From the sequence record MK250029.1: 64,000 bases of DNA. One strand, written 5' to 3'. The position numbers were made by a program, and so were the translations under genes. The notes under the pieces are model-generated. The model ran no database searches. It was given only the letters and a program-made list of their open reading frames with translations, and was not told the origin of the DNA. This document shows positions 3,068 to 48,409 of the stretch, piece after piece. Numbering within the stretch: the first letter of the stretch is position 1; every line of letters starts with the position of its first letter.

Positions 3068-3327
3068 ATAATTAAAGAACTATTCTTTATACATTATATA
3101 TATAATAAAAAATAAAGTCTTAAATGAATAATTTAATTAAAATCATATTTTAAAAATAATTTCAATCTCTAAAAGGAAATACCTTCTGAAAAAGAAAGAA
3201 TNNNNNNNNNNNNNNNNNNNNNNNNNNNNNNNNNNNNNNNNNNNNNNNNNNNNNTTTAAATAAAATCTTTATTTAATTTTTAAATATCTATCATTACCTT
3301 AATATCTTAATATTAATTATACTTGAG

Positions 3328-3705
3328 TTTTGTGAAAAAGTCTACATTTTTGTGAAAAAAGTTTAATAAAAATTAAAAATAATTTATAACTAATTAATAA
3401 TCAATAATATTTATATGATAATTTATACAAATTCTAAATAATATAATAAAAAATACTTACATTTCCGAAAGACTTACCTTACTAAATTCTATTAAATTAA
3501 ATAAATAGAATAAAAATTAAATTAAAATTATAAATTTATAAATTAAATTTTTTCATATATTATATATAGATCTATCACAANNNNNNNNNNNNNNNNNNNN
3601 NNNNNNNNGGGCTTTTGAGAAAAAGTCTACATTTTTGAGAAATATTTTTAATAAATTCTAAAAATAATTTATAAGTAATTGAAAATCAAATAATTTAGAT
3701 ATATG
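3328..3705 (+). repeat. Pair of imperfect direct repeats of about 90 nt (3328-3418 and 3613-3705) in an AT-rich intergenic region with two assembly gaps
   Basis: TTTTG(T/A)GAAAAAGTCTACATTTTTG(T/A)GAAA followed by TAAAAATAATTTATAA(C/G)TAATT..AATCA in both copies; N runs at 3202-3254 and 3581-3608. Confidence 0.75.
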
Positions 3706-4473: not shown

Positions 4474-4649
4474 TAATGTACACGTACATTATATAGTATT
4501 AGAATGAGATATTTTCATTGTTACAGTATACTTATACTGGATCAAGAAAAACATTAAAAAATTGAGAGATTTCTTATGTTTTTCTTATGTTTTTGAAGAA
4601 AAAATATAAGTTTTTTGAGATATTATTTTTTATTATGGAAAAATATGTG

Positions 4650-4657
4650 TATCTTTG
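4650..4657 (+). promoter_or_regulatory. Bacteroidota sigma-A-type -7 promoter box (TAnnTTTG)
   Basis: TGTGTATCTTTG upstream of the ORF at 4705; the same box recurs at 20721, 23132, 27745, 28347 and on the minus strand at 63384-63391. Confidence 0.75.
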
Positions 4658-4704
4658 TATTGTGATTAAAAAATAAAAGATATAACAATTAAAAAATAAA
4701 AAAT

Positions 4705-5355
4705 ATGAGTACAATTAAAGATATTTTCGTTGGTAAGAAAACTCGTAATTCAATCTATACAGCAGATGCTATTAAAAATCTGCTTGTGAAGATTGCATGT
4801 GGTAAGACAAAGTATAATCTTACTACAAAGACTGGTAAGAAGTGCTTCTACAATGAAGTTTATCATGCAATGGGCAAGTATTTCATGTTGGATATTGTGA
4901 ATAAGAATCTGAAAGAATTCGGTATTGGTTCTGAAGAATCACTTGCAACAGCATTTATTGATAATAAAGAATTTCTTATTAATGAATGTAAGTTGAATCT
5001 TTCAGGTTTGGTTATTGAATCAAAATTTGAAAAGAAGGCAAAGGCATACATTAAGAAGTATGGAAATGGAATTGTACCGCCAACTGATGATAATGAATCT
5101 AAACTTTCAGATTTGGAACGTTGTGTTGTTGTACGAACAAAGTATGGTACACATGACCCGTTGATGTATACTATTAAAGGTGCATTAACAACAGATATTG
5201 CAGATAGTGTGAAAGCTATGTATGCATATGAATCAGGTTGTAATTATTATGAGGCTCGACCAATTCTTTATACTACATGGATTAATCTTCCAGATGAATA
5301 TAAAAATGCATCTCGTCCATGTGAAGAGGATGATTTGAAGAACGTAAATGAGTAA
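4705..5355 (+). CDS. Hypothetical protein (216 aa, no TAG), probably early
   Basis: Intact ORF behind a host-type promoter, followed by a terminator at 5364-5406. Confidence 0.85.
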   Translation: MSTIKDIFVGKKTRNSIYTADAIKNLLVKIACGKTKYNLTTKTGKKCFYNEVYHAMGKYFMLDIVNKNLKEFGIGSEESLATAFIDNKEFLINECKLNLSGLVIESKFEKKAKAYIKKYGNGIVPPTDDNESKLSDLERCVVVRTKYGTHDPLMYTIKGALTTDIADSVKAMYAYESGCNYYEARPILYTTWINLPDEYKNASRPCEEDDLKNVNE

Positions 5356-6518: not shown

Positions 6519-6639
6519 AAAGATGAAGTATTTTTATTGACACACATTCAAATGAGCAATACGGCTCATTTGATTCGGTTATGGTTGGATTCCATATAAA
6601 TAGTAAAATTATTTAGTGTTTTGCGATGTATTCATCTTT
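6519..6639 (+). ncRNA. Candidate structured RNA downstream of the small ORFs
   Basis: Closing pair AAAGATGAA/TTCATCTTT, 10-bp hairpin TCAAATGAGC/GCTCATTTGA, and a T-arm-like hairpin TATGG-TTGGATT-CCATA. Confidence 0.45.
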
Positions 6640-6754
6640 ATTTTTAGAAAGTTATTTAATCCTTAATGGATATTCATATAATATATAAATTATAATATTT
6701 TACAATTTATATATTTTTTATAAAATTCCTAATTTTATAAATTATTTAGATAAA

Positions 6755-6960
6755 TAATAAAAGAATATAGTGAGACTAAATTTAAATACGTTTTTACAAG
6801 TTATATCTTAAGTCGTTGGAAGAATTTAAGTTACAACTTATGTATATTAAATTTAGTTTGATTTATATTTATAAAAAAGATAAGATTTAGATAATTATCT
6901 TTCTATATATTTGATATATAGTTTTCTCAGGTTAACTTCACATATATTATGAAAGTTATA
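6755..6960 (+). ncRNA. Orphan copy of the tnpB 3' region (candidate omega-RNA scaffold or non-autonomous element end)
   Basis: 34-nt exact match (6804-6837 = 1960-1993) plus a covarying hairpin (6903-6921 versus 2060-2082) in the same TTT[hairpin]TTTTCT context. Confidence 0.7.
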
Positions 6961-7005
6961 TATGTTATTAAGTTAAATATCTTATAATCATATCAATAGT
7001 AATAT

Positions 7006-7050
7006 AAAAGAGGAAATAGTTTAATGTTAAAAAACTATTTCCTCTTTTTT
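7006..7050. terminator. Intrinsic terminator
   Basis: AAAAGAGGAAATAGTTT...AAACTATTTCCTCTTTTTT. Confidence 0.75.
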
Positions 7051-7092
7051 TAATATAATAAACATAATAAAAAGTAATAGATTACTTAAATA

Positions 7093-8211
7093 ATGACAAC
7101 AACAAAAAATATAATTTAGATTAAAGCAAGTAAATGTATTTTTCTTGCTGATATTCATTTAGGTGTAAGATCTGCATCAGAAGAATGGCAAGAAAATATT
7201 TCATCATATTTTTATAATTGGTTTATTCCATATATAAAATCATTAGTGGAAAAAGATCCTACTTATTTTTTAGCAATTTTAGGTGATGTATATGATGATA
7301 GAAAATCTATTGATATTAATGTAAATGATTTAGCAATAGATATATTTGAAATTTTAGGATCTATATTACCAGTTTATATTATAAACGGAAATCATGATCT
7401 ATCTAAAAGAACAAACAAAGGAAATACATCATTAAGAAATTTAGATAATATTCCAAATGTTACAGTTATAAAAGAACCGACATTAATTAAGATTAAGCCG
7501 TCAACTAAGATATTATCAAATATTATAGCAATACCATATTTGGGTTCACATGAAGAAGAAAATAAAGTATTACTTGAATATTCTGGTAAAGCAAATTATG
7601 CATGGATGCATACAGATATTTCGCAAATGAAATTTGATAATGGTATGACTATTATCGGTGCAGTTGATTCAAAAATATTTAAAGGAAAAATATTATCAGG
7701 ACATATTCATAAACGGCAGGAATTAGGTAATGTTATTTATGTAGGTTCTCCATATCAATTAAGAAGATCAGATATAGGAAATACAAAAGGAGTTTATACA
7801 GTAAATTTTACTAATAACGAATTATTATTTGAAGAAAATAATTATAGTCCAATATTTCATAAAATAAAGGTAGAAGATTTTCTGAAACTAAGTGTTAAAG
7901 AAAGAGATGAATTTCTTAATAATAATTATAATGATATTCTTATAGAAGAATCTGATTTGAGAAAATATAAATCAGGAACAATATATGATATGGCAAATCT
8001 TTCTAATGCAAAGAGAGTGCAAATTATTGTTAATAAATCTCATCATGATTTGGATAATATAGATAATGAAGAATATAAAGAATTATCTATAGAAGAACTT
8101 ATCAATGAATCAATTTCACAATTAGATGTTGATGATGAAACAAAAGACAGATTAAAGAATATCAGTAGAGACAGATTAAAACAAGCAGAAAATGAATTAA
8201 ATGAAGTTTAA
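7093..8211 (+). CDS. Metallophosphoesterase nuclease, T4 gp47/SbcD/Mre11-like (single TAG at codon 9)
   Basis: ADIHLG, GDVYD, GNHD, HTD, SGHIH, YVGSP motifs; the DxH motif lies upstream of the ORF-track start and needs ATG 7093. Confidence 0.92.
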
Positions 8212-26062: not shown

Positions 26063-26221
26063 GCGGGTATAGCACAATGGTTAGTGTGTCGGTCTTCCAT
26101 ACAAGAATAAACTTGTAAAATTAAACTATATGCTAATAATAAATGTGGTATTATAAAATAAGAGTTCGAATCTCTTGCATATAGCAAACCGAAAATGTCG
26201 GTTCGATTCCGATTACCCGCT
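26063..26221 (+). tRNA. tRNA-Gly(TCC) interrupted at 37/38 by an 87-nt insert (26100-26186)
   Basis: Removing the insert gives a perfect cloverleaf: GCGGGTA/TACCCGC, GCAC/GTGT, TCGGT-CTTCCAA-ACCGA, GTCGG-TTCGATT-CCGAT, U73. Confidence 0.9.
26126..26187 (+). ncRNA. Anticodon-less mini-tRNA nested in the tRNA-Gly insert
   Basis: CTATATGC/GCATATAG acceptor-like stem, D-like arm with GG, canonical T-arm AAGAG-TTCGAAT-CTCTT, followed by CAA like neighbouring tRNA 3' ends. Confidence 0.75.
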
Positions 26222-27070: not shown

Positions 27071-27174
27071 GTTGATATAGTTTAATGGGAAAACACCCAA
27101 ATCCCAGGGATAAGAGATAATACTTTGAAATAGGTATTAGAAGATTTTAGATGGTTCGATTCCATTTATCAACT
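27071..27174 (+). tRNA. Aberrant or interrupted tRNA, identity undetermined (104 nt)
   Basis: Good acceptor GTTGATA/TATCAAC, D-arm GTTT/AAAC and T-arm GATGG-TTCGATT-CCATT, but about 30 extra nt and no clean anticodon arm. Confidence 0.6.
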
Positions 27175-47050: not shown

Positions 47051-48409
47051 TTATTGTTCAACAATCTTATACCAATATAAATTATATTTTGACTCCTGTT
47101 GTTTAGGTTTATTTGTAAATTTTTTCACTGCTAATGCATAAGAAGCTTTAATAGTCAAATTAAATATTGGTTTTTTATAAGATTCCAAATTAGCTATATT
47201 TTCTGATACTATATTTGTAATATTAGTATCCTAAGTAATTATATCTGTATCACTGCTGTTAGGATCATTTTTTTTACCTTCTATATCACTGTTGTTTGAA
47301 TCATCTTTTTTATCTTCTGTATTATTATATAATATAGGAATATTCTTAGATGAAAAATTATCATAATTTAAACCAGTGACAACATCTATTATTCGCTCTT
47401 TATCTTTATTATTAGAATCTTCTTCATCTTTAACTATTATCTAAACATTATAGAATGGTACTATAAATATAGAATCTGCATATTTTTCTAATTTGACGTC
47501 TTTTTCGTCATATATTCTTGATATAAGTTTCTTAATTTGTTCTTTAAAACTAGACGTTAATTTTATATCAAAAATAGATTCCCATCTAATTAGACAACCT
47601 AATCTCTAATATAACATTATATCACATAATTTTAACGGTTGCTAATCATTTATGACATATTGATCAGTTTTTGATTTTAATTTATCATCATTTATAAACA
47701 ATGTAGGCATATACTTATTATTGAAATAAATCTTTCTACAATAATCCAAATTTCCGCTAGAAATAACGATATATAATTTACCAGATAATAATTCCTAAAC
47801 AGTAGGTACATATGTTCCATCATATTCTACTGTTTCTGTTCTATCTTCTATTTCTTTATTTTTCTGTTCTTTATCATAATTAATATATTCATATCCTATT
47901 GGCATTATAGAATAACTGTTTTCACTACTATTATCAAAAAAATATAATCCTTTATAGTCATCCTATGCTATATATGAATCATTTAACGCCTTTAAATATT
48001 CATATCCATATTCTACAAAAATATCTTCTAATGATGCTTCATTTGCATTGGTTGCGAATACAGGATTAAGTACACACCCAGCAAACTGCATTGCATTATA
48101 TGTTTTATTTGTATTATTAGGGTCTTTATACTCCTGAAAATAATCATATTTATAATAATTGTCATTTAATTTATTATTATCAAAATATGTCTCATTTTCT
48201 TTAACAATATATTCTTCTGCATTTATATCATGTCTATATGTACCATAATTTCTATAAAAGTCATTATTTACTTGATGTTCATCTGATGCAATATCAGCTA
48301 CTTTTTTATTTTCAATATCATATGATAATCTATCATAACGTGAAAAATCAAATATATTAGTATATGTCTTTAATATTTTCTCATATTCATTATTAACAAT
48401 ATCTGCCAT
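47051..48409 (-). CDS. Hypothetical, probably structural protein (452 aa, TAG=Gln)
   Basis: ORF-track fragment extends through TAGs to TAA at 47051; late-promoter-like box upstream. Confidence 0.7.

Follow-up and report, generated by a model that had tools for sequence, protein, structure and literature searches.

According to the account that PMC10691335 gives of Altae-Tran et al. (2021), stand-alone mobilised omega-RNAs act in trans with compatible effectors, and PATEs often encode omega-RNAs as well, for which TnpB from other elements must act in trans (Meers et al., 10.1101/2023.03.14.532601). Elements of the IS607 family transpose by a core-dinucleotide mechanism that leaves seamless junctions, and in the Clostridium botulinum IStron a mini-IS without both genes was mobilisable in trans (10.1101/2023.11.20.567912). 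Here we analysed a 64-kb stretch of DNA (the window) from the Prevotella megaphage Lak-C1 (MK250029.1), whose first 9 kb match positions 62001-71000 of this genome at 99.7%, and in which an orphan copy of a TnpB-type RNA scaffold lies at some distance from a TnpB gene. The orphan at 6679-6981 is a copy of a ~300-bp miniature IS607-type TnpB transposon, with its ends and the whole omega-RNA gene and without the nuclease gene.

In being a mobilised scaffold copy without nuclease or transposase gene, with effector loci in the same genome, the orphan resembles the stand-alone omega-RNA loci of OMEGA systems, and by analogy it is predicted to be trans-acting and to provide one more target site. In contrast to those bacterial loci, it is carried by a TAG-recoded megaphage and is of IS607 type, and our scans turned up no full-length element that carries exactly its version of the scaffold. 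PATEs, which are minimal IS200/IS605 elements, are likewise protein-less, keep left and right ends, often hold an omega-RNA and use TnpA and TnpB from other copies, but they are moved by a Y1 (HUH) TnpA via single-stranded DNA hairpins, whereas five Lak genomes have no Y1 match over the cut-off and the junctions look serine-recombinase-like with a shared TA. The C. botulinum IStron (10.1101/2023.11.20.567912) has a serine recombinase beside TnpB, no inverted repeats and a core dinucleotide in its ends and target, as the Lak elements appear to have, and in both cases right end and target are one inner base apart (TGGG versus TCGG in the IStron; ATATA in the target versus ATCTA in the right end in Lak). 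Its mobilisation of a mini-IS in trans is what we propose for the Lak miniature elements (minis). However, the IStron core is GG and the element contains a group I intron, whereas the apparent core in Lak is TA and there is no group I intron; moreover, Lak TnpB is without zinc-finger cysteines, and some Lak junctions carry flank duplications or deletions. Among annotated proteins, the closest to the Lak TnpB is that of ISCaje4 in Campylobacter phage CP220, with 43% identical residues across 95% of the length; it is also phage-borne but is annotated as IS200/IS605. Our literature search found no paper linking Lak phages with TnpB.

The shared core and the extent of the orphan element

The window has a GC content of 25.6%, and ORFs of up to 2,695 aa emerge in it only with TAG as a sense codon, in agreement with the use of code 15 described in Lak phages (PMC7824862). 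TGA remains a stop codon, with the ORFs of three TnpB paralogues ending at this codon. Reading TGA as Trp in the tnpB of the window was used only to read through its break in searches; since paralogous TnpB ORFs terminate at TGA, this reading disagrees with the genome and is unsupported, and the TGA at 925-927 is a true stop. In-frame TAG codons, 5-14 in each gene, were observed in the IS607 transposase (Lak-C1 17474-18076, equal to L059:844-1449) and in all TnpB paralogues, and these transposons are therefore adapted to the phage recoding and untranslatable in an uninfected host with the standard code. For comparison we used the GenBank Lak records (Lak-A1, A2, B3, B8 and C1) and IMG/VR contigs (including G001, L113 and L090). 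Three further observations concern other parts of the window. A ~100-nt intergenic sequence at 4600-4725, directly preceding the ORF at 4705-5355, may be a dispersed regulatory or promoter repeat, since contig G001 (416 kb) contains over 25 sequences related to it, in either orientation. Another dispersed repeat, at ~3256-3460, is present in three copies in G001 at 66-86% identity and adjoins runs of N at 3202-3254 and 3581-3608. Within a cluster of six tRNA genes, Rfam matched tRNAs at 26063-26221 and 27071-27174 that ARAGORN missed, and inserts or introns are probable in both because of their lengths of 159 and 104 nt.

An earlier note on this DNA had drawn attention to a 34-nt identity between 1960-1993 and 6804-6837. 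The identity is real: within the window the 34-mer TATCTTAAGTCGTTGGAAGAATTTAAGTTACAAC is present at these two places and nowhere else, while none is expected, 100 shuffles yielding 0 such repeats. In the predicted RNA these 34 nt form an apical hairpin, CUUAAG...UUUAAG, with the loop GUCGUUGGAAGAA. The hairpins with compensated stems at 2060-2082 (CTATAGATTA/TAATCTATAG) and 6903-6921 (CTATATAT/ATATATAG) were also found exactly where they had been described, in the same TTTCT...GTTTTCT context. The homology is wider than had been noted and begins at ~1916 and ~6760 with AAAAGAATATA. At its other side both copies do contain the CTTCA(C)ATATAT hairpin that had been taken as their common end, but they run past it to right ends of their own, at 2188 and 6981; the likeness of the two copies, which is more structural than sequence-level, goes on up to these two different right ends. 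The orphan was thereby given too short an extent, 6755-6960 instead of 6679-6981.

A covariance model built from 14 miniature copies and scanned over the 64-kb window recovered only 6759-6981 (193 bits) and 1916-2096 (86 bits). In the alignment of all copies the columns of the 34-nt core are nearly invariant in 26 of 26 sequences, and instead of linking the two loci in a special way the core is common to the whole family. Nor is the orphan a copy of the scaffold of the neighbouring gene, as the note had taken it to be: it belongs to a separate miniature subfamily, whose ends and 3' domain match those of TnpB elements of another subfamily (family b) elsewhere in the genome.

The boundaries of the orphan (6679-6981, on the plus strand, as are the other parts of the two elements and the features just past the orphan) were placed by empty orthologous sites and are common to other minis. 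Its left-end segment (6679-6769) ends in TTTAGATAAATAATAAAAGAATATA and was recognised by matches to the region upstream of a full-length element and to the left end that precedes tnpA_S, the transposase gene: the first 85 nt are 81% identical to the region upstream of a full-length TnpB at Lak-C1 256085-256170, and 28 nt match the left end upstream of tnpA_S in Lak-B8 at 93%. The rest of the orphan aligns with the last ~70 codons of tnpB and the right end. The predicted omega-RNA scaffold occupies 6759-6981 and consists of a long 5' stem with the invariant core hairpin on top, two short hairpins and a 3' nested stem. No ORF of at least 50 aa was found in 6679-6981 with TAG read as Gln, and tblastn leaves only an 18-residue trace of TnpB (residues 400-417). 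As the orphan is outside any nuclease gene, any activity would have to be in trans.

At least 16 distinct minis were found in the Lak genomes and IMG/VR, in each of which a left and a right end frame a structured RNA region of ~220 nt, and a TnpB ORF was present in 0 of these 16 copies and was not found upstream of them either. The left boundary, at which NATA is followed directly by TAAT(A/T), is common to ten or eleven minis at other places, and the right-end motif AAGTTAAATATC (or TGTTATTAAGTTAAATATC), usually followed by TAA, closes 15 of the 16; the remaining one ends with its locus. Lak-C1 has four minis of 210-300 bp, at 68685 (the orphan), 173632, 336005 and 384252, which are 82-90% alike, while Lak-A1 has one, Lak-B3 and Lak-B8 three each and Lak-A2 none.

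Conservation of the RNA structure and the TnpB paralogues

RNAalifold on the 14 minis returned a long imperfect 5' stem capped by the core hairpin, and after it two short hairpins and a 3' nested stem. In the alignment of the minis alone, which was not fitted to the covariance model, 96.7% of the cells pair, compared to 29-50% in slid controls, and nine pairs are changed on both sides, a number reached by 2 of 500 shuffles. In the joint alignment of all copies 95.1% of the cells are paired (86.9% in shuffles and 23-48% in slid controls) and 36 of the 67 pairs show two-sided changes, although this alignment leans towards structure because it was fitted to the model. The model built from minis recovers every full-length copy at 71-111 bits, with 108-111 bits for four of the five family-b copies, 90 for the copy at Lak-C1 254722, 93-98 for family c and the above 86 for the family-a copy of the window. 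Three pairs are swapped between the hairpin AAAGUCUA/UAGACUUU of full-length copies and AAAGAUAA/UUAUCUUU of the minis; the 3' closing stem covaries between UUCACUU/AAGUGAA in family b and UUAACUU/AAGUUAA in the minis, and in Lak-C1 516340 as well as the Lak-B minis the stem of the core hairpin is changed in a compensatory way. On its own, the sequence of 6759-6981 folds with z = -2.8. The claim that scaffold structure is kept without coding capacity is thus borne out by compensatory changes both in the minis alone and across all copies. The 3' 170 nt of the minis are almost invariant and hence uninformative on pairing; this invariant half could reflect recency or binding sites of the transposase.

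No Rfam family fits the scaffold, and the only Rfam matches were sub-threshold miRNA models on the hairpin at 7006-7048, which we take as chance. A terminator-like hairpin, GAGGAAATAG...CTATTTCCTC with a T run, can be read directly from the sequence at 7010-7051 and is present in empty alleles too. A simple terminator scan called none, and missed this hairpin because its loop exceeds 8 nt; a promoter scan gave sites not above chance level. Sampled words of the region 6600-7100 were recovered from public runs, up to 87% of them in several wastewater and pig-gut DNA runs and 7-18% in six RNA runs.

The neighbouring TnpB gene belongs to a full-length, TnpB-only element of family a at 681-2188, a separate insertion that is present in Lak-A1 and missing from Lak-A2, G001 and Lak-B; its empty site reads ACATATATTATA joined directly to GTCAAAAAT. 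By ORF and homologue comparison and by fold matches to TnpB and Cas12f, the ORF at 751-2133 (TAG as Gln) is TnpB-like, and it is interrupted by TGA at 925-927, codon 59. This TGG to TGA change is specific to Lak-C1, with Trp in the Lak-A1 orthologue and in six paralogues, and the protein is probably dead. The omega-RNA region of the element (1916-2188) has the same 5' architecture as that of the orphan and a different 3' domain, with a right end in AAGTACATTATA, and the covariance model covers only its part up to 2096. Because it is of a different subfamily and has the premature TGA, the TnpB of the window is unlikely to be the partner of the orphan.

Lak-C1 encodes five TnpB paralogues with three scaffold subfamilies. 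Family b is the only TnpB subfamily present in all five Lak genomes, and its TnpB is the sole full-length one in Lak-B3, which has three minis. Two scans of viral contigs revealed no full-length parent with the exact scaffold and hairpin of the minis. Against curated HMMs, TnpB scored 20.8 bits with TIGR01765 and 18 bits with TIGR01766, both under the cut-off, and sequence searches gave no match in PDB or PHROGs; more than 2,600 metagenomic homologues exist, almost none of them labelled by Pfam. The top 35 Foldseek matches of an AlphaFold model of modest quality (pLDDT 59.7) are all Cas12f, TnpB, Cas12k, Cas12g or Fanzor2, with E-values down to 1e-8 and TM-scores of 0.2-0.35. D212, E296 and D362 are invariant in 20 of 20 TnpB homologues and were assigned by their sequence context to a putative RuvC D-E-D triad, whereas the stretch from the second to the third RuvC motif has no CxxC pairs, the zinc-finger cysteines being absent. 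The Lak TnpB proteins appear to form a divergent clade with a predicted nuclease role.

Transposase, insertion polymorphism and junctions

Neither of the two elements in the window encodes a transposase. Outside it, a 201-aa ORF upstream of the TnpB gene at Lak-C1 18131 is a TnpA_S, matching the NCBI IS607 transposase model NF033518 at 168.7 bits (cut-off 110); it occupies Lak-C1 17474-18076 and combines a MerR-like HTH with a resolvase domain. TnpA_S is present in Lak-C1, A1 and B8 and missing from A2 and B3, and Lak-A2 is thus without both TnpA_S and minis. For the Y1 transposase (NF033573) no match over the cut-off was found in the five Lak genomes, while control genomes were positive. Judged by its sequence, the mini-element is IS607-like, since TnpA_S adjoins one of the five TnpB paralogues and its left end resembles that of the orphan, and the shared-TA junctions in Lak match the mechanism described for IS607 elements (10.1101/2023.11.20.567912). 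When the right end of the TnpA_S-TnpB element was compared between Lak-A2/C1 (L025/L059) and Lak-A1 (L029), the sequences diverged completely right after AAAAGTATTTAA, and Lak-A1 was therefore rearranged or deleted from exactly the right end of this element.

The site of the orphan is empty, with a clean gap at ~6685-6978, in Lak-A1, A2, B3 and B8 as well as in the IMG/VR contigs G001 and L113. For the other three minis of Lak-C1 the corresponding sites are empty in A1, A2 and B3, as they are for two of the three in G001; the full-length copies at 47787 and 516340 are Lak-C1-specific as well. From these lineage-specific insertions it follows that the family has made at least six moves after Lak-C1 diverged from relatives of 94-99% identity. 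The orphan and the other minis of Lak-C1 are recent insertions and not decaying remnants. Within orthologous pairs of minis, conservation was no higher in the element than in the flanks, similarity being equal.

Four pairs of filled and empty junctions are seamless and share TA. At the left junction of the orphan ~30 nt of target are gone, and the dinucleotide after its right end is TT instead of TA; the loss on the left could be explained by a secondary deletion between ATATAATAT repeats. At Lak-C1 47787 ~24 nt of target are gone. The mini at Lak-C1 384252 (L026) is flanked by 22-nt direct repeats of target DNA, a sequence that is single copy in the empty allele, and L090 (IMG/VR) by 14-nt repeats; such repeats are outside the simple IS607 model, and IS605 transposition should not make them either. 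A target-site-duplication model was rejected, because overlap lengths range between 2 and 24 nt from copy to copy. On the downstream side of the mini at 173632-173868, at ~173.5 kb of Lak-C1 (L021), the last 19 nt of the right end and 49 nt of flank are tandemly duplicated, which gives two consecutive units of repeat and guide with nearly identical guides, superficially like a two-unit array; the empty allele of Lak-A2 has this flank once.

The putative guide and a proposed explanation of the locus

In the TnpB systems studied so far, the sequence that directly follows the right end provides the guide. By analogy, the putative guide of the orphan would be the 20 nt at 6982-7001, TTATAATCATATCAATAGTA, and the hairpin at 7010-7051, which begins 9 nt after it, would end the transcript shortly after the guide. 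These 20 nt are identical to the empty alleles of Lak-A1, A2, G001 and L113, where they are preceded by GGAATA, which fits the NATA found left of minis. In IMG/VR the 20 nt match only the element's own empty allele, and a guide directed against an unrelated target would not be arranged in this way. Such a guide is predicted by the retention or homing model, in which the element-free allele is cut (10.1101/2023.03.14.532601), and its arrangement appears more in keeping with selfish retention or homing than with a programmable, CRISPR-like weapon of several guides. Since the orphan is a complete and recently inserted mobile element, its 'second guide' is a by-product of transposition.

We consider it likely that 6679-6981 is a non-autonomous, internally deleted transposon of the IS607 TnpB family, which is moved in trans and provides an RNA with which an intact TnpB paralogue cuts the empty allele. 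The nuclease gene would have been lost by deletion between two copies of AAAAGAATATA(A/G)T, one situated ~29 nt upstream of the tnpB start and the other at the 5' foot of the omega-RNA, and the deletion would have fused the left end directly to a complete guide-RNA gene and right end. In family-b full-length copies AAAAGAATATAAT indeed occurs twice, ~29 nt (-28/-30) before the tnpB ATG and at +1138, and joining these repeats by a deletion would yield the junction AATAATAAAAGAATATAGTGAG of the minis; as the breakpoint is placed at the base of the long stem, none of the RNA is lost from them. The mini would then have been moved in trans by the phage-borne TnpA_S (Lak-C1 17474-18076) and have integrated between ATA and TA of its target, apparently seamlessly apart from the shared TA. 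Its transcript would most likely be an omega-RNA taken up by an intact TnpB paralogue, for which family b (Lak-C1 47787 or 254722) is the most plausible source rather than the broken neighbour, and this RNA would direct cleavage of the element-free allele (NATA followed by TTATAATCATATC...). The element could subsequently be restored or copied by recombination, also into co-infecting relatives without it. Transcription of the orphan, its TnpB partner, the TAM, cleavage and homing are what we infer from the comparisons above.

The earlier note had proposed that the orphan is a stand-alone omega-RNA from which the phage nuclease obtains a second guide, a minimal multi-guide system. In this reading the neighbouring TnpB (751-2133) would be directed at DNA of the host or of competitors, in defence or attack. 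Part of this stands: the orphan is a non-coding scaffold of TnpB type with compensated structure, it lies outside a nuclease gene, and stand-alone omega-RNAs are known to act in trans (PMC10691335). The two loci are also only 4.8 kb apart and have the invariant core in common. However, what was seen as an accessory of the neighbour is a separate selfish mobile element with its own left end, transposed recently, whose guide matches only its own empty allele among the viral contigs; the neighbour has a premature stop, its scaffold is among the most distant (86 bits, compared to 108-111 for most of family b) with another 3' domain and right end, and Lak-A1 has this TnpB without the orphan. We therefore regard the supply of a second guide to the neighbour, and with it the multi-guide system, as quite improbable. 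Still harder to uphold is the reading that another full-length TnpB gene formerly stood at the orphan site and has decayed to its 3' part, a pseudogene fragment to which the likeness to the last ~70 tnpB codons and downstream sequence and the short tblastn match at residues 400-417 might point. The site is empty in relatives of 96-99% identity and in the distant Lak-B lineage, the fragment has a left end, and there are at least 16 distinct copies in the 210-300-bp format at unrelated sites; these empty alleles and the many copies of the same format elsewhere refute the remnant, which we hold to be scarcely credible.

The orphan might also be a mobile DNA parasite and nothing else, with hairpins that are needed at the DNA level, as TnpA_S sites or recombination ends, or that are simply young, and with an RNA that has no function. 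The almost invariant 3' 170 nt of the minis, the equal conservation of orthologous copies and flanks and the recency of the insertions are in line with this, and the TT at the right end and the deleted left flank of the orphan hint at a crippled copy. On the other hand, IS607 recombinases use double-stranded ends without palindromes (10.1101/2023.11.20.567912), whereas the minis have kept a 67-pair fold over ~220 nt, compensated between subfamilies and within their own 5' stem, and the deletion breakpoint coincides exactly with the base of the long stem, leaving the RNA entire. A functionless RNA thus seems unlikely to us, and we favour the trans-moved transposon whose RNA serves an intact TnpB paralogue.

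As an extension of this reading, the minis may serve for gene drive or for exclusion when megaphages infect the same cell, with guides that match the empty alleles of rivals and lead to the rival genome being cut, converted or destroyed. Element-free Lak strains come from the same kind of sample, but we put this forward as a speculation with a small chance of being right; if true, it would be an RNA-guided counterpart of the marker exclusion by homing endonucleases in T-even phages.

Stand-alone omega-RNAs are already known, and the locus reveals no new principle. The novelty lies in the setting, which combines a TAG-recoded megaphage, a TnpB clade of IS607 type without zinc finger and a recent burst of six insertions. 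The filled and empty alleles, the three scaffold subfamilies and the covariance model form a natural data set for this clade, which could help to define the TAM, the guide boundary and possibly a compact editor. The division of labour between one transposase, few nucleases and many cheap guide-RNA elements is a known one and is now found in a phage genome too, and the six lineage-specific insertions by which Lak-C1 differs from relatives of 96-99% identity indicate that RNA-guided transposons are active in this 540-kb phage and not mere passengers.
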